From positions 85,064,001 to 85,128,000 of the forward strand of contig CM060731.1 of NCBI GenBank assembly GCA_030704615.1: a stretch of 64,000 nt of DNA. The letters run 5' to 3'. The position numbers and the translations under genes are program-made. Source of the DNA: Takakia lepidozioides. Lineage: Eukaryota > Plantae > Bryophyta. Positions within the stretch are counted from its first letter, which is position 1, and each line of letters begins with the position of its first letter. The notes beneath the pieces were generated by a model. That model did no database searches, was not told the DNA's origin, and worked only from the letters and a program-made list of their open reading frames with translations. This document shows positions 42,549-64,000 of this stretch, in pieces.

Positions 42549-43053
42549 TCGGCCACGAGACGACTTCATCCGAACGGCCTCGGATGGAAATTCGGCGCCG
42601 TTTTTCCATCCGAAGGATATTCTCTGTCAGGCATGTGTCGGCCTCTCCCCCCGAGACGACTTCATCCGAACAGCCTCGGATGGAAATTTGGTGCCGTTTT
42701 TCCATCCGAGGGATATTCTCTGTCGGCCAGGTGTCGTCTTCTCCCCACGAGACGACTTCATCCGAACGGCCTCGGATGGAAATTCGGCGCCGTTTTGCCA
42801 TCCGGGGGATATTCTCTGTAGGCCAGGTGTCGGCCTCTACCCCTGAGACAACTTCATCCGAACGGCCTCATTGGAGATTCGGCGCCGTTTTCCCATCCGA
42901 GAGATGTTCTCTGTCGGCCAGGTGTCGGCCTCTCCTGCGAGACGACTTCATCTGACGGGCCTCGTATTGAAATTCGGCGCCATTTTTCCATCTGTGGGAT
43001 GTTCTCTGTCGGCCAGGTGTCGGCCTGTTCCCCTGAGACGACTTCATCCGACA
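42549..43053. repeat. 96-bp tandem repeat x ~5 with internal hairpin, likely MULE subterminal array
   Basis: GAGACGACTTCATC recurs at 42557, 42653, 42749, 42845, 42939 and 43035. The core is TCGGATGGAAA-TTCGGCGCCG-TTTTTCCATCCGA. Confidence 0.9.
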
Positions 43054-43075: not shown

Positions 43076-44625
43076 TTGACGAGGGGTAACTCGAGGGAGG
43101 CTGCCCACGAGGCAGAGCAGCTCGTTCAAGAGGAGGTTAAGTTGAGACCTGGTGCCAAACCCAAACAGATACAGCTGCAGGCCGCCCATAAGATGGCATT
43201 GGCCAGAATTATGTCGGAAGACGGCTCCGACATAGTTCCTCTCGATGAGAAGGAAATGGAGGCATTGCTAGAGTCGGTGTTCCACGTCTGTTCACCGAAT
43301 GTCCGAAACCACATTGTCTCCTGCAAACAGAGAATTGGGCGTGGCTTGGATATGCACTCCATTCTGGAGGTGAAGCGACGATGTGGATATGACTACATTC
43401 ATGGAAGTAGATTTCCAGGACAAGGGACTGAGGCAGATCGCTATTTTGTATTCAAAATGTCAACGTGTGGGCTTGGCAGCGGCGTCGAATTGGTCCACCG
43501 GATGACGAGTGGGGACTTGTCAAACAGTTAGGTCATGTTTGACCATATCAAGCGAATTACAAATCACCAGTGGGTGACAATGGGTGCACATGTCTACGAC
43601 ACCTACTGCAGGATGCTAATGACAATTGTTATTTGTGAGATGAAAGGAGAGGACACACAATCGGAGATGCTTCTTTGGCAGGGAATAAACGAACAGATGG
43701 CCAGGGCGGGATTGCCCCCTCCCAATTTCCGTGGTTTCATGGCGGACAACGCACAAGCAAATTGGGCTGCCATCCGAAGGGTGTACGGGGAAGATCCCAA
43801 TGTTCCGATGAAAAACAATGAGAGATATTGTGGGTTCCATTTTCTGCAGAGCTTGTCGCAGTACACAACCAGGCTCGTGGCACCAGATTTCAGAGAGGAG
43901 CACCGTTCCATGTGTCTTGCGTGGAAGTGTGTTCCTACCTTGGATGATGCAGAGACACAGTTTGCATGTATACGGGCTTGGTGGACAACGTCAGGTGCTG
44001 TAAAGAAATCAGACGAGGGAGCAATGGTCAGTTGGCTAGCATGGTGGCATTATCGTTTCCTCCAGTTCGGCGACTATATGCGGGAGGTGAGTTGGACAAA
44101 TTTGCGTCCCGTTGAATATTATGCTAGCTACTCATTGCTTGTAACCTGAATATGTGCATGTGCAGGAAATGTGTCTCGACTCCGACACCGACATGCCGAC
44201 AACAAACATGGCCGAATCAGTACATTCTTCCTGGCGTGCCTCCTCTGCAGCGCATCTGGTGGACATCCTCACTGCCACAACGGAGGACATTGTCAGGTCA
44301 ATTATGCAGCAATGCAGGTACAACGAGTTCTTGAAAGGGAAACAGTGGGGCTTGGGGCCGGACAGGTAGGAAATGCTGATGCGGACTGCCTCCAGATCGA
44401 AGAATCCTCGCAAGTGGGCGGCAGCCTTGCGAGAGGGCCTTCAGGGCACGCCATTGCTTCGAAGTGGCCAACACTTGAAAGGAGATGTTCACACCCGTCC
44501 AGTGAGACGAAGACTTGACGAGGCACTTGGCGGAGAAGATGATTCATGGCGAGCTGACAAGAATATTCGCACGCTCCCTCGTGGTCCTGTGATGTTGCCC
44601 GAGGAGGTCTCGTCGAGCACCGCAA
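43076..44625 (+). pseudogene. Mutator-like (MULE) DDE transposase, disrupted; intron ~44087-44165
   Basis: MFDH...FMADNAQAN...CGFHF (CxxH)...TTNMAESVH, with stops at 43529 and 44367. Confidence 0.8.
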
Positions 44626-44639
44626 GTCCGATGTCTGAG

Positions 44640-45392
44640 AAAATGGCGCCGTATCTCCAGTTACATGGCCCAAGAACTGCCCAACATCTGTGCAATCCCC
44701 GGCACCATGTACCGAAATTCGGCGCCACATTTCCAAATTTTGGGCTTACACACCTACCATGTTGGGACCTATAGCCGCGAAATTCCGCACCATTTTTCGC
44801 CGGAGACACCTATTACCGCGAAATACGTCGCAGCTTTCCCTGGTTGCGGAACCTATTACCGCGAAATTCGGCGCCATTTTTGCAGATGTCGCTCGAAATT
44901 CGGAGGTTAGCTATTTCATGAGCATGAGCGGCATGAGCGGCATGAGCGGAGTAGTAAGACAATTGGTTTTCATGAGCAGAAGTACAAATTCCGCATATAA
45001 AAAACATTAAAAATATTATTTTAATGGGATGTGTCAGAAGAAAAAAAACCCATATAATATTCATTGTTTGAAGTAGAAATTGTAGTTTTGAGAGCCGTGC
45101 TCATGATATTTCGATTTCCGCTCATGCGAATTCCGAGCGACATCTGCAAAAATGGCGCCGAATTTCGCGGTAATAGGTTCCGCAAGCAGAAAAATCGGCG
45201 ACGTATTGCACGGAAATAGGTGACTGCGGCGAAAAAATGGTGCCGAATTTCGCGGTTATAGGTCCCAACTTCATTGAAGTGTAAGCCCAAAATTTGGAAA
45301 TGTGGCGCCGAATTTCGGTACATGGTTCCGGGCATTGCACAAATGTTGGGCAGTTCTGGGCCATGTCACTGGAAATTCGGCGCCATTTTTCC
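44640..45392. repeat. Foldback-like long inverted repeat (arms ~44640-44930 and ~45100-45392, AT-rich spacer)
   Basis: The arms are reverse complements and are built from GAAATTCGGCGCC motifs shared with the 96-bp array. Confidence 0.85.
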
Positions 45393-45743
45393 AAACATCG
45401 TCTCCAGACAATGTTGGGACTTAGCCAGTTTTCGGCACAAAAAAGTGAAATTCGGCGCCATTTTTCCAGAAATGACCCCTTCAACTGCAACTGTTGGAAC
45501 TCAGTTTTCTGGAAGATTTGCAAATTTTTCCTGCCGCCATCTTTGAATTGATTCTGTTTTGACATTGAATTGCCACTGGACGTGAACGGATATCCAATAG
45601 TCCCTAGTGTTTAAAAGACATCACTTTAATATTGTCTGTCTCATTCCAGGAGTTTTGGGGTGCAATTCATTACACTGCAAAACAAAGTCTAATGCATAAA
45701 AATACAACTGCAAATATCCATATGGTGGATTCCCTTTTCCCCA

Positions 45744-46918
45744 TCAATGATTTCTGGAATCCCGGCGGAGGAGTTTGTGCAGCTCGTTCACGCTCAACGC
45801 TGGTGCATGAATAAAGTCATCAATAGTCAAGTTCATCCTCAACCTCTTCAGGTAAATGTAATACAGATGCTTGCATGGATAATACTTTGACCCCTTCTTT
45901 GCTTCCATCAACGAGAAGTCCGTACAATTGCAAGTCGGGTCCACTCCAATCGTAATTGTGTATACGTCGTCGCGTAAAGCTGAGCCGGCCGTTGCCATCC
46001 GATAAACACGCCCAAGGCCGGGTGGGGGTATGTCCACGAAGCTCTGAATAGTGCAAGCCATCCCAAGAGCATTGGCAATCCGAGTCTCATTCAACTTGTT
46101 GGGAGGGTGTTGTCTCTTCACTCTTCCGAATCGCATTGTGGGATGTGCAGAATTGTCCAATCCGTCTCTACTGGACGGAGCAGCCTGCAATGGCAGGGTC
46201 TGAGGAACTGGAAACGAGTGGGCCGGGACGTCTGTGCGTTGCACCATTCAAAATCCTGCTGCAGAAAGAGCATCCGCCTCATTCTGAGAAAGGTTGCAAC
46301 CCGGTGCAACAGGCCAGACGCCCGGAGGCTCGGGCATTCCCTGAATCCCGTACTTGGGCTTGCCAGATACATAGGTCATTATGTCGTGCCTACAGAACCA
46401 AAACGTCTGCGTTGTGGCGTGAGAGAATGTGGGAGTCAAAAATCTGTCGCTGAAACAAGGTGCAGGTACAGCACCGTGTGGGTTCCTCCAAATCATCTCA
46501 CCACAGCGTGCTCTCGTATCTACCCGGATGGCGCAGCACTTCCCTCGAAATGCCGGCAATGTCCTTGCTATTCTCCACTGTGACTCCGACACTCTTGTCT
46601 CCACAATGGGTATGTTGTACTGCGTTACTACAGATGGCTCGTTATGTTCCGCGGGCACGTGCCCTGTGCTCAAAGGAGATGGCGATCTTGAACGTGCAGG
46701 ATTTGCGGTGCTCGACGAGACCTCCTCGGGCAACATCACGGGACCACGAGGGAGCGTGCGAATATTCTTGTCAGCTCGCCATGAATCCTCTTCTCCGCCA
46801 GGTGCCTCGTCAAGTCTTCGTCTCACTGGACGGGTGTGAACATCTCCTTCCAAGTGTTGGCCTCTTCGAAGCAATGGCGTGTCCCGAAGGCCCTCTTGCA
46901 AGGCTACCGCCCACTTGC
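45744..46918 (-). pseudogene. Inverted C-terminal part of the same MULE protein, with SWIM zinc finger
   Basis: 46703-46918 duplicates 44410-44625 in inverted orientation. CNCTDF...CKHLYY is a SWIM motif (CxC...CxH). One in-frame stop at 46248-46250. Confidence 0.82.
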
Positions 46919-47584
46919 TCGTCATTCATCATTCTTAGGATGAAAAACATCTGCCAACCCATACGCCCGACGGACGTTGTCCGTTTCTCATTCGCGGAAG
47001 ATGAAAAACATCGTGTGTTCATCCTGTCTTGAACGCAACGGATGCAGTCCGTTTTCCATCCAGGTTAGATGAAAAACATCGGGGTTTTGTTATTTATGTA
47101 TACCTGTCTTGTCCCGTATTTAGGTCCTGCCAGACGAAGTCCTTTTTTCATCCAGGTTGGATTGAAAATAATAATAATAATGACGGGAGTTTCGCAATCA
47201 ATATATTCCGGGTTGATGTCCGGATGAAGAAATCCTCATAGGTATTAATGAAGAAATGTCTCATTAGGGAAAAAAAGGAATGTATTCTGGATGAAAAACA
47301 TCTAAATTCCCTGCAACCCAATTTTTCAATTTTTTCAAAGATGGAAGTTGGGACAACAATTCCATAAACCCAGTGTCCAGAGGGAGAGAGAGGGAGAGAG
47401 AGGGAATCCCACCATCCAACCCCTAGTATGGCAGGCCCTTACGGAGTGAGTGTGGTATGCACTCACCCCGTAAGGGAGTGCATACCACACTCCTCTCCAA
47501 AAGGGTAATCTCTCCCTGCTCCTAGGCCAGTCCTTCGGAAGATGTCCCGTAAAGGATTACCAGGCTATCCTTATTCAAGCTAGG
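46917..47584 (-). repeat. Structured terminal repeat R (pseudo-LTR-like), downstream of ORF-X
   Basis: Reverse complement of 60443-61113. Confidence 0.92.
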
Positions 47585-47788
47585 TATCCAAAACAAGTAT
47601 ATAAACCTTAATGCTGTGATTGGGGTATGTATTGAGCATAGACCCCGAAATGAACTAGTTTATTCAAGGAATTACAGGTGTAAGAAACCAGCCGCTTTAT
47701 GCATGGTTTTCTTTCTTTTTGTTCCATCATTATTCAACAAATCTGCATACATAAGGGAAAGGACATACCATTTTTAGGTTGCCAATGA

Positions 47789-49065
47789 TCATTCCCAAGC
47801 ATCAAAGTTCCTCTTTTGGATTGGGGAGAACTCTCCTGCCACATGCCTGGATCGGTTCGAACCATGGCTCCCAATGTCGATTGTGGAGCAGGATTTGGAG
47901 CCAGAGCCTCCATTGGATGTTCTGGTTACAGACTTAGCATTCTTGGAGTTGGAGAAAGATTGGTGTCTCTGCCCAAACCTGCCACCTCTTTGGTAGCCCC
48001 CACGTCCTCTGAAATTAGCACCCCTGCCCCGGTTGGGTCGCCCTGTTTGCTGGAAAGTGTTCCCTTCAATGCATTGCCGTTTATAGCTATTAAATGCAGG
48101 TTTGGGGAGGCTGTCGGAGAAAGATCCAGGTTTGATCAGTCTCTCAATGAATCTGGCCCCTTTGGAGTCCGGCAGCCTATCAAGCAATTTTGCTTTGGAA
48201 TTATCGGCAAAAGTTTATGCTGCTTCCAATAGGAGCTCCCGGATCATTTGGAATGTTATCTGAGCCAGTATTGCAGATCTGGCAGCCCTCATCAGCCATA
48301 CAATGAAGCTATAGTACTTGCTTTGTGCGGAGGGGTATGTTGCATCAGGAAAAAATGCCCCAAGATGGTTAATCATGTACCAAACCAAGTGATCGAACCA
48401 AGCCACACTTCCAACACATCCAGACGGAGTTGCACCAGGTCCACAATTACATCTTAGGTATGGCCTGTGCCAGTTCCAGAGTTGGCTTTTGTGATTCCGG
48501 GAACGGACAGATCCAGTAGGGGGATCATTTTTGGTCCGGAGAGTGATATTGTCCCTTTGTCACATAGCTTATAATAAAATGTTTTTAATGGCCATGCAAC
48601 TGCGATGGGTTCCTTTTTGAATCTCTGGAAACCATCTAAAGCATCCTGATAACAACGTAGGTGTTCAGCATCAGTGATGTTACCCCACTTCATCCACATC
48701 TCGATGGAGATGGGTGCTAAGAGGTTGATGTTGGTTTGTGGATGCCACATCATGTGCTCGTTGTTGGCCACGTCGAGCTCAACGGAGCGAGGGGGCGTCC
48801 AAGGGACAAATTGTTGATTCCCCGGGGTAACGCCTGCTGCCCTGTCTTGTTCCACCCGTGACATTTCCACATGCTCACAGAAATCCTTCATCGCGTCAAT
48901 TTCATGTTCGGGGAGACACATGTGACTTAAAGGCGGGTGATTGGTGACGGAGGGGGTAAAATCCTGCTCAGCATTGGAGGACGATGTCCGGGACCTGTGA
49001 GAGGGTGTCTCGAACGTACTGGCAAAGTTTGGAAGCGAGCAAAAATGATTTGGATGGGCAACCAT
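47789..49065 (-). pseudogene. ORF-X C-terminal part with RGG-rich tail, disrupted
   Basis: Consecutive ORFs 48454-49065, 48215-48406 and 47789-48187. It ends ...GRPNRGRGANFRGRGGYQRGGRFG... and is homologous to 36895-37674. Confidence 0.65.
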
Positions 49066-50528
49066 CCGTTCACCCGTTGAATGTATTCCGTTGGATTTGC
49101 TATTACTTTGGGACTTGTTGGACTGTGTTTCGCGTGCTCACGATTTTTTTTTCATTCCATTTTTTAATGGGGCGTGTAATGACTCCATATGCAACATGCA
49201 TGCCAAATTTGGGAGCGAACATAATTCATTTGGACCCAAAACCACAGTTTCTTCCCTGTTTTGCACTCCAAACTTGATTTGTGTTCTACTTCGTGCACTC
49301 TTCATAGAGAGTTCTACAATATAGTGAGCGAAGATAACACTTTTTTTGGGGGGCATTTTTTATTGGTCCAAATATTGGCGGGGGAGTAGCGGTGGGATGC
49401 TTGAAGCCGCTCACTGAAGGTTCAAAAATGGAGCAAATAGAGGTACATATAGGCCCCAACAACATTCTGTCCAAAGGAATTACCTGCAGGCTGGTCTCCC
49501 CATAGTTAAGAATTGGGCTGAAAACCAGAAAATATTACCTGCAGGGAAGTAATCCCCTTTGTTAAAACGCAACAGGGAGGCAATTCCGACTTTTCTGCCG
49601 AATCAGCTAGCTCAAAACCGTTGTTCTACAGAGCCCAGCCTCCCCACCAAGGTCCTACGAAACGAGTGATTTATTATTTATTATTTATTTTATTTTATTT
49701 TCACTCTGCCTGTTCGCAGCCTTCGGTGGCTCCAACCGCCACGACTCCTCACGGCCCGCCCTAGGCGCTCGTTGGCCACGGGCTGCCTCGTGATACCCCG
49801 TGTGTCGAGGCCCTTTGCCTTGAGGGCAGGGGGTCGGGACACATGAGGGGCTGCCCCTGTGGTGGGGGCAGCGGCAGCGATAGGTATGGGGGGCTAAAGC
49901 ACCCTTGAGTGCCCAAGGCACTCAAGGAGGCGGAGGCGCTCACTAGGTGGAGCCCCGCACACCGGGTTGCGGTGGGGGTGGCTCCACAAGGGGTGGTGGT
50001 AGCTTAGCGGGACTTAGTGGGGGTGGCATAGGACTCACCATGGGGGCGGAGACCTCGTGGTGGGAGTCGTGGGGAGTCTTGGGACTCATCACGGTCCATT
50101 GGGGCCGCGGTGAGTGGGCCAAGACTCACCGCGACTCACCACCGGGAATCGAGGGTCTTCGTGGTGGTTCGCCATAAAATGGCATGGCTGGTTATGAAAC
50201 CCCCGCGGACAGCTACAGAAGTATATATAGGGAGTAGTAACCCGAGAACGGTGCAAGCCCGTTGGTGACCAAAAACTAGTGAGTAAGCGAGCGAGCCGGA
50301 AAGCGACCAAAGAGTGGGGAGCTGTTCCGGACTGCCATCTACCAAAGGGAATTCCACTAGTCCCAAATAGGTGGAGGGTTTAGTGGGAAGCGAAGGGGGA
50401 CCGTTATGTCCCGGTGAGCAGCCGAAGCTCCAAGTTGGCCCGGCGGCCAGGTTGGGAGTCAGGCGCGCGCATCAAAGCGAGTAACTATGACGTGAAGGGG
50501 AGCTTACCGAAGGGAGGTGCGCGACACT

Positions 50529-50540
50529 TGGTATCAGAGC
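50529..50540 (+). promoter_or_regulatory. Primer-binding site for initiator tRNA-Met
   Basis: TGGTATCAGAGC, 2 nt after the 5' LTR. Confidence 0.95.
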
Positions 50541-50581
50541 TTAGAGTTTAGTACGCGATCGTCCTTGGGATTGGCCTCATC

Positions 50582-53500
50582 ATGGGGTCGGGCAAGCCGA
50601 AGCGAAAGCGGAACGGCCCAAAAGATGATGATCCTGGTGAGCCCGATGGGGGCGACGTGTCACCGAAGCAGCCGTTTGAGGAAGCGATGCATGTTTCCGA
50701 AAACGAGGCCGCTCAAGAGCGGGAGGAATCCGAGGAGTCGGAGCCCAATGAATCCTTGAGAGCTCCGACAAACCAAGAGATGCCTCCCATGCCGGCAGCC
50801 TTTTGGGAAGGGTTGTTGGCGCAGTTTGGCGGGACGTTGAAAGACGTGTTGAAGGCGGCTAATGCCACTTCCACTAAGGCAAAGTTTAAGGTGAAGCCTA
50901 AGGAACCCGGCACCTTTGAGGGCGTCCAAAATCGGAAGGCACTCAACACCTGGCTCCTGGAGCTAGAGCAGTACTTCCGGGTGGCCAAGTTGAGTGACGA
51001 GGATCGGGTGGAAGTGGCTCCCACCTATTTGAGGGGCTATGCTCAACAATGGTGGCAGAAACGCCTTCACGACCGAGGCCCAAGCCCGGAAACCTTGAAC
51101 TGGAGTGGGTTCAAGGAATTGATGAAGAGACAGTTTGTGCCCCTCAACGCGTCCTGGCTTGCCCGGGACAAGATGAGGAATTTGAAGCAAACAGATGACA
51201 TTCGGGGGTATGTCCAGGCTTTCAATGGGCTGTTGCTCGAAGTCGCGGACATGGCAGAACCAGAAATGGTCTTCAACTTTGTGGCGGGACTGGCCCCATG
51301 GGCCAGGCGGAAGTTGGAGGAGAAGCCACCCAAGACTTTGAACGAGGCAATTGAGAGGCTGAATGTTTCTCGGATGTCCCTAGGGGTGAGAGACAAGGCC
51401 GTACAGAGCTGAACCACAAGAAGACCCGGCGGGAAGGTGACTCCTTCCGACCGGAAAGAAGTGGGATAGGCCACGCGGCGACAATGGCACGTGGAAATCG
51501 AAGGGAGGGCCTTCACACGTCAAGGCGGCACCCGGTGCTTCGAAAGGAAAAGTAGGTGGAGCAACTTATGGCGGACAGAAGGCGACCTTTGATGGAGTGT
51601 GTTTCAATTGCGGGGAGCCCGGGCACATGGCCAAGAAGTGCACAAAACCTCGACAATTGAACATGACTCGAGCAACCACGGAGCTGTCGGAAGATACCAT
51701 CAGTCGCTTGGTGGAAGCGGTGGTCGCCAGGACTTGCAAGGTAGGCAACTATTATTGTGAGTTGTATCAGGAAACTGGCGCCCTGCGTAAAGGGAGTCAG
51801 TTATTGTTCGTGGATGGGATAATATCCGGAACTAATGTGTCGTTGTTGGTGGACACAGGAGCGTTGCACTCCTTCATGACACCGGCAGCGGCGCAAAAGT
51901 TGGGACTCCCGACAAGTGACGTGGGGGCCTCTATTGAGGTGCGTTCTGCCAAAGGAGAACCACAGTTGGCGACAAGGTTGGCGTTTGATGTTCCTCTTCA
52001 ACTGGGGAGTTGGGAGGGACGTGAGAACTTCACCATCTGCGAGATCGATGGAGTGGATCTCATTTTGGGGATGACCTTTTTGAGCAAATCCGGAGCGGTC
52101 ATAGATGGCCGCAAGAGAGTGATCACGCTGCCATGTGGGAATGGTGGCGAGGTTTTACGAGTGTCGGAAACGCCCAAATCCGTGGGAGGGCGAATAAACC
52201 TTCTGTCAGCAAGGGAGTGGGCCGTGGAGGAGGCACACGAGCCCCAGTTTTTGCTTTACATTAGAGAAGTGAAGGGAGAAGGCGATGGGGAGCCGAGCCC
52301 AGATTGGATCAAGGGGATCTTGGAGAAATACCAGGATGTGATGCCGGAGGATTTACCAAGCGGCCTGCCACCGCGAAGAGGAGTTGACCACAAGATTGAG
52401 GTGATACCGGGATCGGAACCGCCTGCCAAGGCACCCTACCGGTTGAGCCACAGGGAGTTGGTCGAGCTGAAGACTCAGCTCAAGGATCTAATGTCAAAAG
52501 GGTACATCCGGCCGAGTAAGTCACCTTATGGAGCCCTGGTGCTATTCGCAGACAAGAAGGATGGGACGCTACGGATGTGTGTCGATTACAGGGCTTTGAA
52601 TAAGGTGACTATTAAAAACCGGTACCCTTTGCCAAGGATCGACGACCTTTTCGACCAGTTGGCAGGAGCGAAGTATTTCAGCCGGATCGACTTGCGCTCC
52701 GGCTATCATCAAATTCGGGTGGCGGAAGGAGATGAGGAGAAGACCGCGTGCAGGACAAGGTATGGTTCATATGAGTTCTTGGTGATGCCTTTTGGGCTCA
52801 CTAATGCACCGACGACCTTTAGCACGCTGATGAACAGCCTTTTTCAAGAGTGGTTGGATGACTTTGTGATCGTGTACATCGACGACATCTTGGTGTACTC
52901 GAAAACAAAGGAGGAACACCTGGAGCACCTCAAAAGGGTGTTCCAAAAGTTGCGGGAAGGGAAGCTGTACGCCAAAGCTTCAAAATGCAAATTCGGGGTC
53001 ACGAAAGTGGAGTTCTTGGGGCATGTGATTACACAGGATGGGATCAAAATGGATGACAGAAAGGTGAGGGCGATCTTGGACTGGGAGCCTCCGACTTCGG
53101 TCTCGGGAGTGCGATCCTTCCTAGGACTCGCCTCCTATTATCGGAAGTATGTGAGAAATTTCGCCAAGATCGCGGGGCCGCTGTCGGACCTTCTGTGTAA
53201 ATCCAAAGTCTGGGTATGGAACACATTTTGTGGCCAAGCTTTTGCTGAATTGAAGCAGCGGATGGCGGAAGCTCCAGTCTTGAAAATCCCGGAGTTCGAT
53301 CGTCCATTTGAGATTCATACAGATGCGTCGGACTTCGCGATTGGGGGTGTACTTATGCAAGATGAACGTCTAGTGGCTTACGAAAGTAAGAAACTGAATG
53401 AAGTGGAGCGACGGTGGCCGACGCACGAAAAAGAGATGAAGGCGGTGGTGCACTGTCTTGAGCTTTGGCGCCACTATGTTGGTTCCAACCCAGTGAAGGT

Positions 53501-55142
53501 GTTCACGGACAATGTCACGGTGAAGTATTTTGCCACGCAGCCCAAGTTGTCCCCAAAACAACTTAGGTGGCAAGATACTTTGGCGGTGTTCGACGTGGAT
53601 ATCCAGTACAAACCGGGACGAGACAACGTGGTGGCCGATGCTTTAAGTAGAAAGCAGCAGCTCTTGTTGGTGTACAAGGGCGAGACGGCGCTCCAAAGGA
53701 AGATCCGGAAGGCTTACCGGAAGGATGAGCTGGCGAAGTCCGTGATGCAGGACTTGAGGATGGGGGTTAAATCGCAGTTCCACTTGCAAAATGGACTGCT
53801 CCGGTATAAGCAAAAGCGTCTCTATGTGCCGAAGGGAGGGATCAGAGATAGCCTCTTGAGAGAATGCCATGATAGCCCGCTTGCGGGCCACGACGGAGCC
53901 AAGCGCACTGCGGCACTCCTGAAGAAAGAGTATTTCTGGCCCAAACTGAGGGAGGAGGCAGAGGAGTATGTCAAGACATGCACCACATGCCAACAAAACC
54001 GGAGCGAGTACAAAAAGCAAGCGGGGCTGTTACAACCCTTGCCGATTCCAGAGGGGACTTGGGAAAGCGTCTTGATGGATTTCATGACTGCTATGCCGCT
54101 GTCAAAAGGATTCGATGCAATCATGGTGGTGGTGGATAGGTTCAGTAAAATGGGCCATTTCATCCCCACCAAGGAGACGGCAACGGCGCAGGAGACAGGG
54201 CGACTTTACTTCGCCCACGTCTTAAAGCATCATGGAGTCCCGAAGGATATTGTCTCGGATCGCGATCCAAAGTTTACGAGTAAATTTTGGAGGACACTTT
54301 GGAAGAAGATGGGGACGAGGCTGAAGATGAGCACCGCCTTCCGACCTACGACGGACGGCCAAACGGAAAGAGTGAATTCCGTAGTGAAGCAATTCTTGCG
54401 GAATTACGTGTCGGCAGACCAATCAGACTGGATGGAACACTTAGACGCGGCAGAGTTCTGTTATAATAACACAGAACACTCCGCAACGGGAGTTTCCCCT
54501 TTCGTATTGGTCTATGGAAAAGCACCTCTGGTGCCGACCAGTTGGGCCGCCCAGGACGTTGAGGAACCGGCAGTAGCGGCGTACTGGAAGAACGCGAGCG
54601 TTTGTTGAAGCTCGCAAAGTACAATATTGCCAAAGCTAGGAAACGGTATGAAAGGCAGGCGAATCGGAAGCGGAGGGAAGTGAAGTTTGAGGCAGGCACA
54701 GAGGTCTGGTTGGAACATCAAGAATTTCCGACTACCTCCGGAAGTGAGTCCGAAGTTCGTACCTCCGTATGCAGGACCCTTTCGCATTCGGAAGGTTATG
54801 AATGAGGATGTGTATGAATTGGAGCTGCCGGCAAACAGCAAGGTGCACCCAGTATTCCATATCTCCCTTTTGAAGCCTTACTTCAAAGATGAAGCGCGTC
54901 CGAATCGGCATCAAGTGTTGCGTCCGCCACCTATGCTGTTGGATCATGAAAATGAACCTGAGTACGAGGTGGAGGCAATACTTAAGTCGAGGAGGTTCAA
55001 GAACCGAGAAACGGAGTATCTCGTCAAATGGAAGGGCTATCATCATGTGGAGGCATCTTGGGTGCGTGCCTCAGAAATGGGAAACGCATCCGAGGCGGTT
55101 GCAGCTTTCGAAGGGCGACCTCAAAAGCTGAAGAAGCGTTGA
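50582..55142 (+). CDS. gag-pol polyprotein (apparently one ORF broken by single-base indels)
   Basis: ORFs 50582-51412, 51597-54608 and 54687-55142 contain CCHC, DTGA, YIDD, RNase H (TDAS...NVVADALSR), HHCC/DDE integrase and a chromodomain. Confidence 0.93.
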
Positions 55143-56773
55143 TGGGGACATCAACCTTGGAGCGTGGGGGAGGAAATGCATGCTTAGCCCGGCTTAGCTA
55201 GCTTAGGATCCGATTACAAAAACTTGTATTGTACAAAAATTTGTTATAAAGGAAATGGGTTCCAAATGTTGTGCGTCCTATTTTGTTTGGAATGGTGATG
55301 CATGATATGGTTGGCTAGTGTGTAGAATGCATGCTAGCTTATAAAAGTGGGAGAGGTAAATTGGGTTAATCGTGTGTTTGTGTAGTGCCGAAATCGGATG
55401 ACCCCCATCCGAGGGGCAAGGAAACTTGTGCCTTCCTTGGGAGTTCACGTGCTAGTGCGCACCTGGCGTGTGCGCGTACTATAACTGCGCTACCGAGGGG
55501 GTTGCCTTGTAGTGCGGGCTAACGCAGAAGCTACGTGCTTCTGTTCACGTACTATAATCGTGTAGCCTCGGGACGAAGTCATAGTGCGGCTTCGGCGTGT
55601 TCCCGTACCTCAGGCCAGCATTCCAAGGCAGACCCAATTGTAGTGATTGGGGCGCACGGTTGGTTCAAGGTTATCTTCCTAGTCAAAGAGGGTTCCAGGA
55701 ACCCTTGCTCAAGGTGATGCCAAAAGCGGCATCATGAGCGATCGCAAGCAATGTTGTTGCAGTAAGGCGATTCGATCCTCAAGGAGGATCGTTCCTTGGC
55801 CTTGAAGTAGGCCAAGAAGAGTGCACTGGGAGGAGCTGGAGAGGCTCCACCCTTGGCCGGGACTTGGAGGAAGTCGGCCGACCTAGCTAGTGGAGAGTAG
55901 AGTCAAGTGTGGGGTTTGGTTCTTTGCCATGGGACGCCATGGTGCGGAAACAAACTCCTTGATGTGGGATGCCACAACTTGGATGTTCGTTTCTACAAAA
56001 TGGACAAGTCGATGAGGACATCGACTCCCTGTTGGTAGGGGTGTGTGTCGCGGCCCTTTGCCTTGAGGGCAGGGGGTCGGGACACATGAGGGGCTGCCCC
56101 TGTGGTGGGGGCAGCGGCAGCGATAGGTATGGGGGGCTGAAGCACCCTTGAGTGCCCAAGGCACTCAAGGAGGCGGAGGTGCTCACTAGGTGGAGCCCCG
56201 CACACCGGGTTGCGGTGGGGTGGCTCCACAAGGGGTGGTGGTAGCTTAGCGGGACTTAGTGGGGGTGGCATAGGACTCACCATGGGGGCGGAGACCTCGT
56301 GGTGGGAGTCGTGGGGAGTCTTGGGACTCATCACGGTCCATAGGGGCCGTGGTGAGTGGGCCAAGACTCACCGCGACTCATCACCGGGAGTCGGGGGTTT
56401 TCGTGGTGGTTCGCCATAAAATGCATGGCTGGTTATGAAACCCCCGCGGACAGCTACAGAAGTATATATAGGGAGTAGTAACCCCGAGAACGGTGCAAGC
56501 CCGTTGGTGACCAAAAACTAGTGAGTAAGCGAGCGAGCCGGAAAGCGACCAAAGAGTGGGGAGCTGTTCCGGACTGCCATCTACCAAAGGGAATTCCACT
56601 AGTCCCAAATAGGTGGAGGGTTTAGTGGGAAGCGAAGGGGGACCGTTATGTCCCGGTGAGCAGCCGAAGCTCCAAGTTGGCCCGGCGGCCAGGTTGGGAG
56701 TCAGGCGCGCGCATCAAAGCGAGTAACTATGACGTGAAGGGGAGCTTACCGAAGGGAGGTGCGCGACACCGTG

Positions 56774-58166
56774 GTACCACTCCCACGAGCCTTCACGGCC
56801 CGCCATCCCCACGATCTGGTCACCGTGCCCACCCGTTGTGTCCGCACCACAGCTTCCAACGGTCACGGTCAGCAGTCACGGCCCATCACGGCCACTATTC
56901 CCTGCGTTCCCTGGAACTCCCAACGAGTTCCCATGCGTTCCCGGGCGTTCCCGAGCTGGGGTTTGCTCCTGCACCTGCTGCCGATGAGCTATGGCTTCTG
57001 CGGAGCCATCAACCCCGTCGCCCTGCACTCCTGAGCTCTCACGGCCCACTAGAAGCGCCCCCAACACAACAAGCAAGCTATATGCTGCCCAACAAGCTCC
57101 ATTTCTTCATGAAGCTCACAAAAACGAATCTGAAAATACACACCTTTACAAACTTGGAGCACCTACAGTTCTACTGCACATTCCCTAGCTCTAGGACGCC
57201 TTGTTGCTGCCCTTCCAGCCCCCCGCTCTTGCCACTCCAAGAGCCCTTACACTGTTGAGTTTCAGATTGAAACTCCAACTCAGCACATGTTTCACAAGTG
57301 CACTGATTTGCACACAAGAGGGACCTGCCCCCTCTCTTCACTCATACCTCTTCATGAGTTTGGAGTTGAAGCTCCTAACGGGCTGCGATGCATCCCCTCG
57401 CAGCTCCACTATTCGGCTGCTCCTCATCTACCCGCAACAACTAGTTTCGGGCAGAAATACCTGGAGCTGATCATATCATCTCCAACCTGCAACACGCTAG
57501 TTTCCCATGCGCAGCCCACATTTCTGCAGCTCCTTAACTCGGCCTGCAGCTGAAGAAGATGACCACCAGTTCGCCCACTCGTGGCCAACATCTCCTCCGC
57601 TTCACACTAGAAGCCCAAACTTGGTTGCCATAGCGTTGAGCTATGCAACGCCGCTCTTCAACATAGGCTACCCGCCTCTCTATCCATGGCAAACCTGCAA
57701 TCTGTTTGCCTTTGCACTCTATCCGCTTTGGATAGGCTCATGCACGGCTCCCTGCACTCTAGGCTGAACCGCTTCTCATGATCTGAAAACACAAGTGCTA
57801 CAACTAACTCGAACCTGGCACTCATAGACTCGAGCTGATCTTTCTCGAGTGATAAAGAAAGGAATAATACAAGCATACAAGCTCTCTCAAACTCACACAC
57901 TTGCACATGAAAACATCACTCTTATATTAAGTCGAGCCAAGTGCACCCCACACCATGGGGAATCCACACTACAGCGCCATAGCTAGACGCGATGATTCTC
58001 AACTCGAGAAAGATGAGCCCACCGCGATCTGCCGTGAAGATACCAACGCCAGGTGCCCAAACATGTATTGGTCCCTGGATTGATACTTGGGTCAATCCCA
58101 AATGTCAATATATAAAAGCTAGTTATTTCCTAGCTAACTTCACACTAGTGGTAAAATAACTTGACA
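56774..58166 (-). mobile_element. Long LTR-like sequence (family B), interrupted by the chromovirus and continuing left of 49798
   Basis: Begins TGTCAAGTTATTTTACCACTAGTGTG on the minus strand at 58166 and is homologous to 63111-64000(+). Confidence 0.65.
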
Positions 58167-58299
58167 AATTTTTTCAAGGATGGAAGTTGGGACAACAATT
58201 CCATAAACCCAGTGTCCAGAGGGAGAGAGAGGGAGAGAGAGGGAGAGGGAGAGTTTTGTTTCCTGATCTCTCCCTCTCACTCCTTCTCTCTGTCCCTCT

Positions 58300-60380
58300 C
58301 CTCCCTTGGGATATGTTCATATGCTCTATCCCAACAAAGGAATGGAATGGGTCAATGTCAAAGGTCTCATCAAAGAAGCTTTGGAATTTTTTGAACAGCC
58401 TGGTTAATGTCTATTGCTTGATGATGTTGTGTTTGGATGGACTTATCACAAGCAGTGCAATCTGGAATACTACCAACCTGCTTCCGTCTTCCGTAACTTC
58501 AGTTTCTCACAGGATTTGACACCCAATCATCCATGTCTATGTGAGAGCACCAATAGATTTAAAAAGTTTTGCGACAGTGATACACTGGCAGAATTCCACA
58601 TGCCTGGTGACTCTCACACTCTACATGTACGGACAATGGACCTCACCATTATCCGACACCATGGTTTGAGGAAGCTATTTGGGCTAGGTATGAATCATAT
58701 CCCTTTGAGAAAAACTCTACTGAAAGAGATAGTAGAGGAGGTATCTCTAGCTTTTTGGAAAACATGTGAAATATTGGATGTATCAGAATCTGATCCCTGG
58801 GTATCTGAATGCCATGAATGGCTCAAGCAAACCTGCTGGGACAGATTAAAGAAAAAAACATACAAGGGAATTTTCTCACAACACGAGAAAAATCCCCTTG
58901 AGATGGCGGATGCCCAAGACGAACTAGCTTGGCTTCGAAGTCATCTGTATATGTCAGGCTTGGACAAAGCTAACAATAATGTTTGTTTCATGTGTGTGAA
59001 GCATATCAGAACACAAGCCTTTCACAGGCTGATGGGTAAGGACTTTAAGCCATGCATCCAAAATGAGGTATGGACTCCACCCACAGAAATCAGGGATTCC
59101 TTGACTAATGATTTAGAAAGGACGATTCCTGAACTGTCCACTGAAATCTCTGCTCTACCATACATCATGGGGATCTATAAACTACACAAGAAAAAATACC
59201 GGTGGATCACTAATGCCCACAAATGTATTTTTAGTGGGCTAGCAAGTTTACTTACTTGTGCCACTATGACTCTTTTGCCGCTTGTGAAAGAGTGGGTAAA
59301 AATGAAGCTGGACACCTATGAAAAATTTCTTTAAGTCTCTACGTCTATGTACTGGATTATAGACAATACTATGGACTTTACCCTGAATTTACGTGACAAG
59401 ATACATAGCATATTTGTGGCTGTCATCACCCAATGCTATGAGAATATACCCTTATCAGGAGAAGATAACCTAGGTGCAGCCATTGCTTATGTGATTAAAA
59501 TTGCCTTTAAGCAATATCACGCATCTCGACCTAGGTCCCAGCATGTTTTATGGATCCAAACAAATGAAGGAAAATTTGGGAAGTGTAGGTGGGGACCTAC
59601 TTCCCCTAAACCTGGCAGTTGGATTGAGCTGTCTGAAGCAAGGTTGCTCGAGCTCCACGGCTGGTTGATGTCCCATTGCTTTGTTGCTTTAGGGGACCGG
59701 GTATGACAGCAAATATCAGGTATCCCTATGGGCTTTTCTTGTTCACCTTTATGGTGCAATTTTTTTTTTTATCCTATGAAATCCGGTTCATTTTAAGATT
59801 GGCTACACTCGGGGAATCACAACTGATGGCCAAGTTCGAATCAGCTTTCCGTTACATTGATGACATATGCTGGCTTAATGCAGGAAATGCTCTAATGTTT
59901 CTGAATCCCTCAGCTGATCGTAGTAGTTCCAACCCATGGTGGATATATCCTTTGAATGTGGTCGAAATTAAGCCTGAAATATTGAGAACCAAATCTGAGT
60001 CTCAAGATGAAGGCCTGGAAGCTTGTTTTATGAACATCCAATTATCAGTTGTGAATGAGGAGACAGGTGAATTCCACGTCCAGAAATATGACAAGAGAAG
60101 GGCTCTCCCTTTCTCATATACCCAATACATTCAGTTCAGGTCAAACCGACCAGTGAACCAATCATACAATGTGGTGATATCTCAGGCTGTACCCATGTTA
60201 TATATTTCCAGTACTGTTCAATCTGCCTAGAAAGAGTGTGGGATTCTGATTGACACCTTAGGAAAAAATGGCTTCAAAACGGACAAGTTGTTACGAATAT
60301 TACTAAGGCTCCTTGAAGAAGGAACTTTTCCTGGTATACACTTCCAGATTGCTGATATGGTTAACATGCTCAGAGGTAAG
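58300..60380 (+). pseudogene. Penelope-like element reverse transcriptase, Naiad/Chlamys type, 5'-truncated and disrupted
   Basis: NKG...CLC...HVRTMDL..I....LR...DKANNN...LPYIMGIYKLHK...YRWI...YWIIDN...QISGIPMGFSCSPL...FRYIDD...IYP...YDKRR...SN. There are 3 stops and about 2 frameshifts. An inverted piece of R sits at the 5' junction (58167-58240). Confidence 0.85.
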
Positions 60381-60442
60381 CACTATCTTTATCAACCTAA
60401 ATGATTTCAAAGATTGATTTCATTTTGCTTGTTCTAAATCAC

Positions 60443-61113
60443 CCAGCTTGACTAAGGGTAGCCTGATAATCCTTTACGGGACATCTTCCGAAGGATTGGC
60501 CTAGGAGCAGGGAGAGATTACCCTTTTGGAGAGGAGTCTGGTATGCATTCCCTTACGGGGTGAGTGCATACCACACTCACTCCGTAAGGGCCTGCCATAC
60601 CAGGGGTTGGATGGTGGGATTCCCTCTCTCTCCCTCTCTCTCCCTCTGGAAACTGGGTTTATGGAATTGTTGTCCCGACTTCCATTTTTGAAAAATTTGA
60701 AAAATTTGGGTTGCAGGGAATTTTAGATGTTTTTCATCCTGAATACATTTCTTTTTTCCTAGTGAAACATTTCTTCACTAATACATGTGAGGTTTTGCTT
60801 CATCCGGACATCAACCCGGAATATACTGATTTGCAAAACTCCCGTCAGTATTTATTTTTTCAATCCAACCTGGATGAAAAAAGGACTTCATCTGACAGGA
60901 CCTAAATACGGGACAAGACAGGTATACATTTTTTTTTTTTAAAAACCCCGATGTTTTTCATCTAACCTAGATGAAAAACGGACTACATTCGTCGAGTTCA
61001 AGACAGGATGAAAACACGATGTTTTTCATCTTCCGCGAATGAGAAACGGACAACGTCCGTCGGGCGTACAGGCTGGCGGATGTTTTTCATCCTAAGAATG
61101 ATGAATGACGAGC
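60443..61113 (+). repeat. Structured terminal repeat R downstream of the Penelope-like RT
   Basis: Reverse complement of 46917-47584. It contains interleaved inverted repeats and multiple GATGTTTTTCATC/GATGAAAAAC motifs. Confidence 0.92.
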
Positions 61114-62552
61114 CAGACAAGGAAAACCCTGCGCAACCCTAATGTCTTTCTTTTTGCGCTGCAAGAGTGCGCGCGATGGCGGCTTAGAGGGAATGATGGT
61201 GCTCGTGCTGCAGATATCATGAGCTGCCAATCCCTGAGTGTTTATGGCTCCTGTGAGCGCTGCCTATGCGGGCTCTTTAAGGCGATGGCGGTGGCTTAGA
61301 GATGAGGGGATTCACTATCTCATTTGTCTGTTTTTTTGCTGCACAAGGGAACCACGGCAGTGATGGCGGAGGTACCACCTGCCTGCTTATGAAGTTTCCC
61401 TAGGAGCCCTCCTCTGGATCTTTGATGAATGGCGGCGTCTTGGTAGAACAAGGAAGTCTCTCTCTCCCTCCCTTTATAAACCCTACCTTTTGAGACCAAG
61501 CTCTTTTTTCTTGTGCTTGGCAAGACGTTGCTTTGGTTAAGGTAGCAGTGCTGTGGTGTTGGCGGAGACCTCCCTGCACGGTTAGGCTTGTGGAGAGATG
61601 GCGACCCTCCCCCAAACAGTAAAAAAGGTTTTTTTTTTTTCTGTTTGTTTTGCTTCCCTGCTTTCTTTGGCATTCTCTGCGCTTAGATTCAATTGTATTT
61701 GACCTCGATAGCAAGTGTGGAAGCCTGCTACTCACCTCGTGCATCCTCACTAACTCACAATGCGTTGTGGTTGTTTTTGGGACGGGCACAGGTGATGGCT
61801 TCCACTTAATATACTGATGTCTAGGTGCTGCTGGATGCCAAGTGGGATTGCAGAGCTGGGGAAGGAATCGCTTGCCATGGACTCATCTTAAAATGTTGAA
61901 AAACTAAACTACTTTATGGTTTTTCTTGATCCTACCTCTTTCCTTCCTTTATTTATGAAGAACAAGTGTAATGCTTTCTACGATGGGCTATTTCGGCCCA
62001 GCCAGTGGAAGACCTCTGCTTTGTTGTGACAGCCGGGTTTATGATGGCTTATGTGAGAGACACACGTCTGTTTTCCAGGCCCTAGTTTGCTTTGCTTACC
62101 TTATGGTAGTTGGAAACAAAATGAGAGGCTGCAAGGAACTGTTTGCTGCAGCTACTCTACTTGAAGAAAAGTGTAATGCTTTCTACGATAGGCTATTTCG
62201 GCCCAGCCAGTGGAAGACCTCTGCTTTGATGACCATTTGACCTGCACCACATCAAGGCCAAGATATGGCCAAGTACCCGCCATCCCACCCAGACCTCTGA
62301 ATGTGTATCATGATCATGAATGATGGTCAACCAGCATCAGTGGCATACTCTTTGGGTTATGAATAATACTGACATGAACACATTACTGTGCATGGATGTA
62401 ATTCTGGATTTTCTAAGCTTGATGATTGATGGATGGTGCCACTGTTAAGTGGCTGATATTTCTGATTATTCTTTCATGACAACGACCCTAGGGGTCCTGT
62501 CTTTGTCTTGACATGACAAAAAGTATCTTCCCTCTATCTCCCTCTCTTTTAA

Positions 62553-63110
62553 GCTCCCGACGAGATGAGTTTAAGGTCAGATGGTGGTGTCAGCTGCAGC
62601 ATATGTCCAACACCAGATCTCCTAAGTTAATCGACTTTATATCTTGGAAACAGGACCGCCCACTTACTGTCAAACAGGCTAAGTCCTGGCAGAAGACAAT
62701 AGAAGATATTCTCAAGGACTTGGACCTGGAACCGCAAGTCTTCACCCTGCTGGATAAATCTGACTTAGAGGCTGTAGTGTCCAACCATGTCTATTGCCAT
62801 GAGATTGTCTGATGAAAATGAAGTTAGGCAAAAAACTTCCCTGAACTTGTTTCCAGCCTATGACATGGGGGAAGACATCTTGGATGACCTCAAGGATCTA
62901 CCCACTCTCGGCACTAGACTGAAATTTAATCTTGGGGCAGGAAGCCTTCCTTTGATAAGCAAACAGAAGCAAAGAGGATCGGGAGAGTGCAATTGCCCGT
63001 TGTGTGGGCAACCTGAAGACATTATTCATTTTCTGATACACTGTCCGGGGTTCTCTCACCAAAGAGACGCTCTCTTCAAATCTATCAAGGGAATTGTGCA
63101 TATACCTCTG
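62553..63110 (+). pseudogene. 3' fragment of a non-LTR (LINE) ORF2 with C-terminal CCHC zinc finger
   Basis: SW...IEDIL..LDL...LKFNL..GSLPL...CPLCGQPEDIIHFLIHCP...R..LF, cut by the family-B insertion at 63111. Confidence 0.7.
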
Positions 63111-64000
63111 TGTCAAGTTATTTTACCACTAGTGTGAAACTAGCTAGGAAATAGCTAGCTTTTACATATTGACATTTGGGATTGGCCCAAGTGTCAATCC
63201 AGGGGTCAAGGCAGATTTAGGCCCTGGAGTGGTTATCTTCACGGCAAGCGCGGGAGGCTCATCTTTCTCAAGTTGAGCCTCACCGCGCCTAGCTATGGCG
63301 CCGTAGTGTGGATTCCCCATGGCGTGGGGTGCACTTGGCTTGACTTGTATTTGAGTGATGAGGTTAAATATGCATGAGTTTATGCTTCAGCTTTGTGAGC
63401 TCGCATGAGCTTGTGCTTGTATTCTTCCTCTTTATCACTCGAGAAAGATGAGCTCGTATCTATGTGTGCTAGATACGAGTTAGTTGTAGCACTTGTGGTT
63501 TTTGCTTGAGAATGAGCGAAACCAAGTTGTTATGCAAGGAGCACCGTGGAGCTCTTGGTTGTTAGAAGCGGAGGCGATGTGGGTTACGAGGTGGTAAACC
63601 TTGGCATTCGATCTTCAGCTTCAGAGATGAAAGCACCATACTGTAGGTAATTCCAGAGCACCTTGATGGTTTCAGATTGTGTACATGCATGAGCAAGCAC
63701 GATTGGGAAGAGGACCAGTCAAGAGCAGGTTATAGTGGCTTTGGTGGCAAAGCTGAGAACTGGACTTGGGAATGCGAGCTGTCATTGTGTGAAGGATTGC
63801 AAGACCAAGCGAAAGGGCTGATTTGGCTTGGGGCAAATCAGTGCACTTTGTGGAGTATGGTGAGATTGGGTTTCAATCTCGAGCTTCAGCATTGAGAGGG
63901 CTCTTGTCATGGCGAGAGCAGGGCTGGAACAGGAGCTAAGAGGTGCGGCAAGGCCATGGAATGTGCACCTAGGGTTACAGAGCTTGGAAGAAGAGCTCTT
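63111..64000 (+). mobile_element. LTR-like sequence (family B), runs off the window
   Basis: Starts TGTCAAG and is an inverted homologue of ~57250-58166. Confidence 0.65.

Follow-up and report, generated by a model that had tools for sequence, protein, structure and literature searches.

Decayed fragments of a probable two-gene, endonuclease-less Penelope-like element in Takakia lepidozioides

The stretch analysed here (the window) comprises 64,000 nucleotides (nt) of Takakia lepidozioides (Bryophyta), positions 85,064,001 to 85,128,000 of contig CM060731.1 in assembly GCA_030704615.1, and all window coordinates below count from its first letter. It carries the remains of a Penelope-like element (PLE), namely a broken reverse transcriptase (RT) gene, two copies of a second open reading frame (ORF) termed ORF-X, and a repeat of about 690 nt termed R. 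A preliminary description had stated that RT and ORF-X are each followed, in their own sense orientation, by the same repeat. This holds, as the copies of R at 60428-61116 (plus strand) and 47597-46914 (minus strand) are 91% identical over 694 nt, with ungapped blocks of 93%–95% (blastn self-comparison of the window, E = 0). That description went on to propose a native unit of the order RT-R-ORFX-R, or else two co-dependent modules mobilised through R. The fragments concerned are copy C (RT and its R), copy B (ORF-X and its R) and X2 (the other ORF-X copy), with the following features; LTR stands for long terminal repeat and UTR for untranslated region.

58167-58244, minus strand: 78 nt of R in inverted orientation, flanking the RT copy on its 5' side and made up of the simple repeat and the next 48 nt
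58245-58297: low-complexity junction, GA-rich and then CT-rich, immediately 5' of the onset of RT homology (58218-58253 in the tandem-repeat scan)
58298-60404, plus strand: copy C, decayed and 5'-truncated ORF2 (PLE RT), with its natural stop at 60402-60404
60428-61116, plus strand: RT-linked R, a 3' UTR or pseudo-LTR block of about 690 nt
60534-60632, plus strand: 3' stem-loop (27 bp) and G-rich linker, minimum free energy -61.8 kcal/mol, z -4.5
60619-60650, plus strand: CT-rich simple repeat, about three copies of the unit TCCCTCTCTC
60651-61116, plus strand: distal R, 466 nt, with sub-repeats of about 65 nt, each holding a 10-12-bp hairpin (GTTTTTCATC / GATGAAAAAC)
62427-62547, plus strand: conserved element of about 120 nt, cut off by a fragment resembling a long interspersed element (LINE), with a counterpart 90-200 nt 5' of the X2 start codon
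47789-49065, minus strand: X1 (copy B, ORF1), lacking its 5' end and disrupted by a frameshift (near 48543) and an in-frame stop (48217-48215)
47670-47788, minus strand: copy B junction and first RT codons, with stop TGA, 17 nt and then ATG GTA TGT (ATG at 47771)
46914-47597, minus strand: ORF-X-linked R, with its stem-loop at 47492-47394 and its simple repeat at 47405-47379
36895-37674, plus strand: X2, the N-terminal 259 codons of a diverged second ORF-X copy, 3'-truncated
36695-36805, plus strand: conserved element upstream of X2, partner of 62427-62547

In copy C, RT homology sets in at GYVHMLYPNKGMEW (58309), right after the low-complexity junk, and the landmarks CxC, motif A and YIDD lie at 58531, 59413 and 59850. 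The frame is interrupted by stops at 58405, 59332, 59704 and 60228 and by a frameshift near 59765-59795, and in motif A a Val replaces the Asp (alignment A9). The motifs that can still be read are 'PCLCES' (CxC), 'GLDKANNN', 'YKLHKKKYRWITNA', 'RYIDDI' and the thumb 'YDKRRALPF..SNRPV'. The features by which a PLE is recognised are present, including the DK(G/A/N) motif (here DKA), RT motifs 1-7 and the conserved thumb. The zf-CDGSH-like CxC that marks the Naiad/Chlamys lineage lies 5' of the RT, in a column conserved in A9, and an IFD-like insert of about 85-90 residues, judged by motif spacing, separates 'VF.ADI..CYE.IPL' from 'GIPMGFSCSP' in all members of that alignment. The anatomy of the insertion is also that of a PLE, as copy C is 5'-truncated and preceded by the inverted R piece, and pseudo-LTR or tandem layouts are found in its relatives. 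Insertions of PLEs typically carry such inverted pieces on the 5' side (PMC8557442).

For all protein searches, broken ORFs were submitted as uninterrupted pieces, one by one. The first RT piece obtained 239 matches among 1.84 billion representative proteins, the best being metagenome proteins of 679-692 residues (aa) with 41%–43% identity, while the only species-assigned matches were Selaginella moellendorffii D8ST44 and three Chara braunii proteins (including GBG83558 and GBG72928). By tblastn, the window RT matched the RT of locus L001 with E values of 3.5e-113 and 4.4e-53 and 42%–46% identity. In the case of the closest full-length relative (43% identical), the predicted structure retrieved TERT in all of the top 14 Foldseek matches in the PDB (E 8e-5 to 4e-2), and the assignment of the RT to the PLEs in the preliminary description is therefore upheld by its motifs and, through the model of a relative, by its nearest structures. 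Pfam gave for RVT_1 a weak match under its cut-off; run on every window piece, it assigned no domain, be it RT, endonuclease or any other, to the RT pieces or ORF-X, and a profile search of PDB sequences with the RT returned nothing. An N-terminal GIY-YIG endonuclease (EN) domain was sought as well. Pfam detected none in the window pieces or in 20 RT homologues, and the full-length relatives (679-692 aa) align to the CxC region from their first residues onward, leaving no space for such a domain. Since no GIY-YIG domain was found, the window element belongs to the EN-less offshoot only (PLE-X), outside Naiad and Chlamys proper. Craig and others described PLE-X as EN-less Chlamys-clade elements of Chara, Selaginella and mosses, such as PLE-X1_sTam, whose N-terminus is extended by a unique segment containing CxCX1-8C (Craig et al., 2021, PMC8557442).

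Of the two ORF-X copies, X1 lacks the first approximately 138 codons that X2 has, and the two share 62% protein identity over 121 residues (74% as DNA). X1 contains a CxCX8C...H motif at about 48451-48413, which reads 'RCNCGPGATPSGC...WFDH', and an RGG tail at about 48031-47969. A search 3' of X2 for an RT remnant or an R-like tail, by tblastn and with both of the RNA models described below, found none. A word-based search with X2 yielded one protein, located on a 966-kb eukaryotic contig (locus L001), and a later search added about 28 further ORF-X proteins of 300-591 aa. Tblastn of X1 against the ORF-X of L001 gave an E value of 5.5e-40, and blastp of the 534-aa ORF of L002 against the X1 pieces gave 3e-19, 5e-16 and 6e-3. 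The L001 protein in turn matches the N-terminal part of a Chara protein (E 7e-12) and of a Selaginella protein (E 6e-7), and these matches span the Cys motif and the following 'WFDH..W' helix. No Pfam domain was found in the ORF-X homologues, and a profile search of PDB sequences with ORF-X returned nothing. The AlphaFold model (mean pLDDT 52) predicts a helical N-terminus, an alpha/beta core at residues 205-400 and a disordered RGG tail; Foldseek against the PDB found no match below E = 1 and no hint of a nuclease fold.

Because of the matches to the Chara and Selaginella N-termini and the CxCX8C motif in X1, ORF-X is identified, by sequence, as the N-terminal extension (CxCX1-8C) of PLE-X elements. 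The preliminary description had treated it as an unrelated partner of unknown nature, which it is not. Both traits of PLE-X are thereby found, the CxCX1-8C extension, here a separate ORF, and an RT that is homologous to PLE-X proteins from Chara and Selaginella. Another early claim was that sequence downstream of the RT-linked R, at 62275-62545, is homologous to the region just upstream of X2. This stands for 62427-62547 against 36695-36805 (76% over 123 nt, E 4e-15) and not for the whole of the interval. The conserved segment 62427-62547 could be a leader or promoter element belonging to a unit further downstream.

The relation between the two genes becomes clear outside the window. An ORF-X homologue adjoins an RT homologue on the same strand in six other families, drawn from metagenome contigs, Chara and Selaginella, and in five of them ORF-X comes before RT. 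Locus L001 has ORF-X at 9560-11182 and RT at 11485-13492, on the same strand; in L002 both genes are intact, with ORF-X (534 aa) ahead of RT (679 aa); the same order is found in L014-L017 and L009-L013, and it also results when the Selaginella (L018) and Chara (L019) proteins are mapped onto their genomes. Since the two ORFs are linked on one strand in these families, ORF-X and RT are two genes of one element and not two modules, and the concern that ORF-X might be unlinked from the RT at other loci is excluded. Every intact relative carries both ORFs on one unit. Where the order is ORF-X then RT, there is no R-sized block between them, the gap being about 300 nt in L001 and the Selaginella locus and about 1.4 kb in the Chara copy. 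In four families (L002, L014, L015-17 and L009-13), as in window copy B, only 17-24 nt separate the ORF-X stop from the RT start:

L002: stop TGA, spacer 20 nt, CTG GTA TGT
L014: stop TGA, spacer 18 nt, CTG GTA TGT
L015-17: stop TAA, spacer 20 nt, ATG GTA TGT
L009: stop TAA, spacer 24 nt, ATG ATG

Downstream of the start codon, the conserved protein reads 'VCTDP...LGRN.LVKKSN.K.IGF.H.LYPNRAMEW'. In the window, in L002, in L009 and in the TARA family, ORF-X closes with an RGG-rich tail before its stop codon. A local intron that would remove the ORF-X stop was considered and rejected for the L002/L015 family, as L015 has no GT donor 5' of the stop. At the Selaginella locus (Selaginella moellendorffii GL377639.1), the annotated intron of SELMODRAFT_425444 (L018 9860-10190) takes out an in-frame RGG tail and the stop of the upstream ORF, and this fused gene model may join two ORFs that are separate in the element. 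A reversed order, RT and then ORF-X, was observed in the TARA ocean contigs L003-L008 (e.g., L003 1780-5689), where a 782-aa RT is followed after a 4-nt gap, with no repeat between, by a 518-aa ORF-X homologue with an RGG tail; the ends of contig L003 share a 119-nt overlap, from which a unit length of 6485 nt follows.

Layouts with pseudo-LTRs or tandem units are seen in L001, L002/L015, L003, Chara and Selaginella. The L002/L015 contigs are one unit long or circularly permuted, with a 2.2-2.4-kb leader between the simple repeat and ORF-X. In Chara, a repeat that begins at (AC)n and extends for at least 2.1 kb is present both 5' of ORF-X and 3' of RT, and in Selaginella a repeat of about 600 nt starts at the C-terminal end of the RT. 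In the relatives, the next ORF-X follows about 2-3 kb after the RT. The order RT-R-...-ORFX does exist, but solely as a head-to-tail (tandem or pseudo-LTR) arrangement, usual for PLEs.

Against this background, copy B is best read as an RT-deleted derivative produced by internal deletion, and not as a separate module, because the ORF1/ORF2 junction is still there, followed by what remains of the RT start. After the TGA of X1 (47791-47789) the remnant reads '..KKTMHKAAGFLHL'; RT similarity ceases near 47672, and R begins 75 nt further on, about 190 nt from the ORF-X stop. Copy C, in which only about 23 nt lie between the RT stop and R, is best read as a 5'-truncated unit. It starts inside the RT N-terminal region beside junk, for which reason it is taken as truncated and not as RT-only by design. 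As a separate observation, the deletion breakpoint of copy B (47672) and the truncation of copy C (58309) fall within about five codons of the same RT N-terminal position. The idea that copies B and C are halves of one unit split by an inversion was also considered, and was rejected because R lies 3' of ORF-X in copy B, an arrangement that inverting a leader-ORFX segment would not produce.

The repeat itself has sharp limits in both copies (60428/47597 and 61116/46914), and inspection of the two window copies revealed neither terminal inverted repeats nor target-site duplications of its own. Within its first approximately 220 nt, a 27-bp stem-loop gives way to G-rich sequence, which in turn is followed by TCCCTCTCTC in about three copies. 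The inverted 5' junction reported earlier is confirmed: 58167-58244 matches R 60621-60698 as its reverse complement (94%) and the ORF-X-linked R at 47328-47405 in direct orientation (99%). The onset of the distal part (after 60650) resembles the L002 sequence 3' of (TC)n, and its sub-repeat motif has 19 matches against 5.8 expected. Distal R (60651-61116) probably represents the beginning of a leader, that of the following head-to-tail unit; the alternative is that it forms the true 3' end. Telomeric repeats were sought near R in the window, and none was found. A tandem array at 42556-43051 (5.2 copies of a 96-nt unit, each with a hairpin GGATGGAAA / TTTCCATCC) looks, in its hairpin, like the sub-repeats of distal R.

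All relatives except Selaginella, where it is not clear, have behind their last ORF the succession of stem-loop, G-rich stretch and simple repeat that is found in R. The repeat is family-specific: (TC)n in L009 as well as in L002 and L015, (AC)n in three copies from Chara, (TTTG)8 after ORF-X, the last ORF there, in the TARA family, and (AACCCTA)3.5 in L001, the complement of the plant telomere repeat, in a position that matches the CT repeat of the window. The L001 unit is bounded by reverse-complement plant-type telomeric (AACCCTA)n at 9100-9220 and 13609-13652, and its upstream telomeric repeats merge into a longer degenerate tract, though the locus is internal to the 966-kb contig.

A covariance model built from the two window copies of R found, in 224 kb of fetched loci, post-RT sites only (L015/16, L002, L009-11 and L001; E 7e-10 to 3e-3). 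Conversely, model R2, built without the window, finds the RT-linked R with an E value of 1.7e-25 and the ORF-X-linked R with 2.6e-22. In alignment A7, 95% of cells are paired, compared with 30%–52% for slid partners, and 18 of the 27 pairs show changes on both sides; this alignment was fitted with the model and is biased towards the structure, so that the reciprocal searches outweigh the covariation. As the models recover R-type structure in both directions, between the window and the post-RT sites of the relatives, R is the element's own 3' block, not a foreign insertion, and the counterpart of the PLE pseudo-LTR. The preliminary description was right in taking RT, ORF-X and R as one Penelope-like system of the Naiad/Chlamys lineage with R as a terminal, pseudo-LTR-like block.

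Taken together, the region is read, with a probability of about 0.8, as decayed fragments of one EN-less Chlamys-clade family of the PLE-X type, with a native unit consisting of leader, ORF1 (ORF-X), ORF2 (RT) and 3' block. ORF1 would supply a helical N-terminal part, the CxCX8C...H cysteine motif and a disordered RGG tail; ORF2, with CxC, IFD-like insertion and thumb and lacking GIY-YIG, would start 17-24 nt past the ORF1 stop; and the 3' block would consist of the long stem-loop, the G-rich linker and the short simple repeat. In units arranged head to tail, the 3' block and the start of the next leader would appear as the repeat R, a pseudo-LTR. Copy C (58298-61116) would then be a 5'-truncated unit, preceded by an inverted piece and followed by a partial leader, copy B (49065-46914) a unit that lost almost the whole RT by internal deletion, which would have brought ORF1 beside R, and X2 a third, older fragment. 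Plausibly, 60651-62547 is the leader of a downstream unit, which would account for the 120-nt match with the region upstream of X2. The system is neither bipartite nor new in kind, and consists of decayed two-ORF copies of the PLE-X type.

For the mode of replication we infer the following as a whole. A single RNA would encode the ORF1 and ORF2 proteins, ORF2 being made by re-initiation or read-through at the junction, as its tightness suggests. ORF1 likely binds RNA through its RGG tail, in the manner of gag or ORF1p, and the 3' stem-loop is probably what the RT recognises. Pairing of the terminal simple repeat with a matching microsatellite or telomeric 3' end would prime synthesis with no endonuclease encoded by the element, which fits the microsatellite bias of Chlamys elements (PMC8557442). 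An RNA that bears R, including one of the RT-less copy B type, could be copied in trans.

Several observations weigh against this interpretation. The window holds no full-length copy, and ORF-X and RT are never contiguous in it. The RT start in copy B is recognised from a brief nucleotide motif and from 12 residues that match weakly (E 0.03), and the 75 nt between the RT remnant and R match nothing in copy C. With just two copies of R for comparison, the RNA may end either at the simple repeat (60650) or at the end of R (61116). The fold of ORF-X is unmatched, and its RNA-binding role is suggested by the RGG tail and the position in the element. Finally, PLE-X elements were described with canonical hammerhead ribozymes (PMC8557442), and none was detected in the window or in eight related loci, including Chara and Selaginella, by scans (Rfam at the gathering threshold for the window, E ≤ 10 on 60300-62600, and a core-motif scan of R) through which minimal or split hammerheads could slip. 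The Rfam scans of the window and of those loci yielded no other family either.

The arrangement RT-R-ORFX-R, in which the terminal repeat would stand between the genes and again after them, would explain why 62427-62547, 3' of the RT-linked R, resembles the region just 5' of X2. It would also agree with the permuted or tandem contigs of the relatives, in which the next ORF-X comes about 2-3 kb after the RT, and with the TARA family, where ORF-X directly follows the RT. However, any head-to-tail ORFX-RT array shows an RT-...-ORFX order, only 4 nt and no repeat separate the TARA ORFs, ORF-X precedes RT in five families with no R-sized separator (with a gap of 17-24 nt in four), and copy B itself retains the ORF-X/RT junction. 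The native order is instead ORF-X, RT, R, with 17-24 nt between the genes, and we regard the RT-R-ORFX-R unit as unlikely. A similarly low standing is given to a bipartite system in which an autonomous RT-R family and a separate, co-dependent ORFX-R family would both be mobilised through R. Copy B is an ORFX-R with no RT, has only R (91%–95%) in common with copy C, and its R is nearer to the inverted piece at copy C (99%) than is copy C's own R (94%); moreover, Chlamys elements are known that are non-autonomous and have their 3' ends in common with autonomous elements (PMC8557442). Yet both copies are single, decayed and truncated, copy C begins within the RT N-terminal region beside junk sequence, the junction and RT-start remnant of copy B are the signature of a deletion derivative, and the intact relatives all encode both ORFs on one unit. 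The bipartite reading is therefore improbable.

It would be far less credible still that R is an independent miniature inverted-repeat transposable element (MITE) or short interspersed element (SINE) that came to lie behind both ORFs by chance. Sharp limits in both copies, a richness in hairpins and an inverted-repeat element that touches the end of R in copy B could be cited for it. On the other side, the first approximately 220 nt of R are the structure found after the RT or last ORF of all relatives but Selaginella, the models agree in both directions with nothing else hit in the 224 kb, R stands in sense orientation behind both ORFs, and it lacks its own terminal inverted repeats and target-site duplications. 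The possibility of a MITE, already raised in the preliminary description, is set aside on the strength of the RNA models, which tie R to the post-RT sites of the relatives.

Within the two-ORF PLE-X-type reading, a broader proposal may be considered. The RTs of PLEs are the closest relatives of telomerase. Because of this kinship, and because PLE-X has no endonuclease, a structured 3' end tipped with a repeat is a testable candidate for priming. It is possible, and we put it forward tentatively, that telomerase-like priming is common to all PLE-X-type elements, such that the stem-loop and the G-rich linker (possibly a G-quadruplex) would position the family-specific repeat for pairing with a matching microsatellite or telomeric DNA end, and ORF-X would be an obligatory RNA-binding partner encoded on the same RNA, with ORF2 made by termination-reinitiation. 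The proposal spans plant, charophyte and marine lineages, including the one with RT before ORF-X, and repeats that are CT-rich, (TC)n, (AC)n, (TTTG)n and (AACCCTA)n. If true, it would answer a question posed in 2021, namely how EN-less PLE-X elements integrate genome-wide. Pairing-primed, endonuclease-free synthesis was proposed earlier for telomeric EN- PLEs (PMC13159263).

In terms of known systems, the element is closest to PLE-X, with which it shares an RT with CxC and IFD-like insert and lacking GIY-YIG, green-plant hosts, pseudo-LTRs, a CxCX1-8C motif in the upstream part of the protein, and RT and ORF-X homology to Chara and Selaginella proteins. It differs in that the 'extension' is, in the window and the metagenomic relatives, a separate ORF1 with an RGG tail and a stop, in that no canonical hammerhead was detected in the window element, and in the location of the window copies outside ribosomal DNA (rDNA). 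In the Selaginella copy, ribosomal RNA was sought as a test of rDNA location, with no hit. Chlamys-2_cBra of Chara braunii is likewise a two-ORF Chlamys-clade PLE with a nucleic-acid-binding ORF upstream; it is, however, EN+, carries a 3' hammerhead and has as ORF1 a gag-like zf-CCHC knuckle protein (PMC8557442), whereas ORF-X has no Pfam match and bears the CxCX8C...H motif and an RGG tail.

Athena and Coprina elements resemble the window element in having no endonuclease and, in some cases, a coiled-coil ORF1 (Gladyshev and Arkhipova, 2007, via PMC8557442, PMC13159263), and in a short 3' repeat complementary to the priming DNA end, to which the (AACCCTA)3.5 of L001 is comparable. They belong to a separate RT clade with neither CxC nor IFD. 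The window copies have a CT-rich repeat that is not telomeric, and an internal location, and do not qualify as Athena-type Terminons. In pairs of LINEs and SINEs of the stringent type, a shared 3' stem-loop with a short simple repeat serves as the recognition tag for the RT, so that copying is open to any RNA that bears it. Kajikawa and Okada are said to have shown in 2002 that eel UnaL2 and UnaSINE1 share their 3' tail. That pair offers an analogy of mechanism for R only, since its RT class, that of a LINE with an apurinic/apyrimidinic (AP) endonuclease, is unrelated. MRC1 of Chlamydomonas has only its 3' end in common with the autonomous family, and has pseudo-LTRs and head-to-tail copies (PMC8557442); it was not described as coding, whereas copy B retains ORF1 and the ORF1/ORF2 junction. 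Both internal-deletion and 5'-truncated derivatives have been documented for Chlamys elements (PMC8557442).

As far as the window is concerned, the outcome is an ordinary one, and the usual decay products of PLEs (5' truncation, internal deletion and pseudo-LTR) explain a seemingly modular system. Three points go beyond what has been published to describe PLE-X. The extension forms an ORF1 of its own with an RGG tail, about 20 nt before ORF2 in four metagenome families and copy B; a 3' module of stem-loop, G-rich stretch and simple repeat, with a family-specific repeat, is found from land plant to Chara to ocean metagenomes; and a marine lineage carries the two ORFs in the opposite order.

The surroundings of the PLE copies are a transposon-rich, internal stretch of the chromosome, in which the following neighbours were recognised.

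44410-46918: inverted-repeat element with 220-nt inverted repeats (95%) and outer ends CAAGTGGGCGG
49800-56769: Ty3/Gypsy LTR retrotransposon with 728-nt LTRs, 97%–100% identical, between copies B and C
57786-58166 and 63111-63501: inverted repeat of about 390 nt, 82% identical, enclosing the RT-R block 58167-63110
About 62548-63110: LINE-like 3' fragment with a weak zf-RVT match at 62787-63137, terminating exactly at the inverted repeat

The element at 44410-46918 touches the final bases of R in copy B, with a possible 4-bp CGAG duplication on its flanks, and a continuation of R sought beyond it (from 44409 downwards) was not found. The repeats at 57786-58166 and 63111-63501 were considered as part of the PLE and rejected, being only 82% alike; for the same reason the inverted repeat predates the R copies, and it is probably a pre-existing structure that received the insertions. 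The LINE-like fragment (62548-63137) has a 77%-identical tail at 15339-15442. The Ty3/Gypsy element encodes a pol ORF of 1003 aa with protease, RT, RNase H and integrase, and the same family is represented at about 32438-33663 by a diverged copy in inverted orientation. Further upstream, seemingly fragmented PLS-class pentatricopeptide-repeat ORFs at 17217-18032 and 20371-20832 point to a land-plant host, having their best matches in Diphasiastrum complanatum (48%), followed by Sphagnum and conifers.

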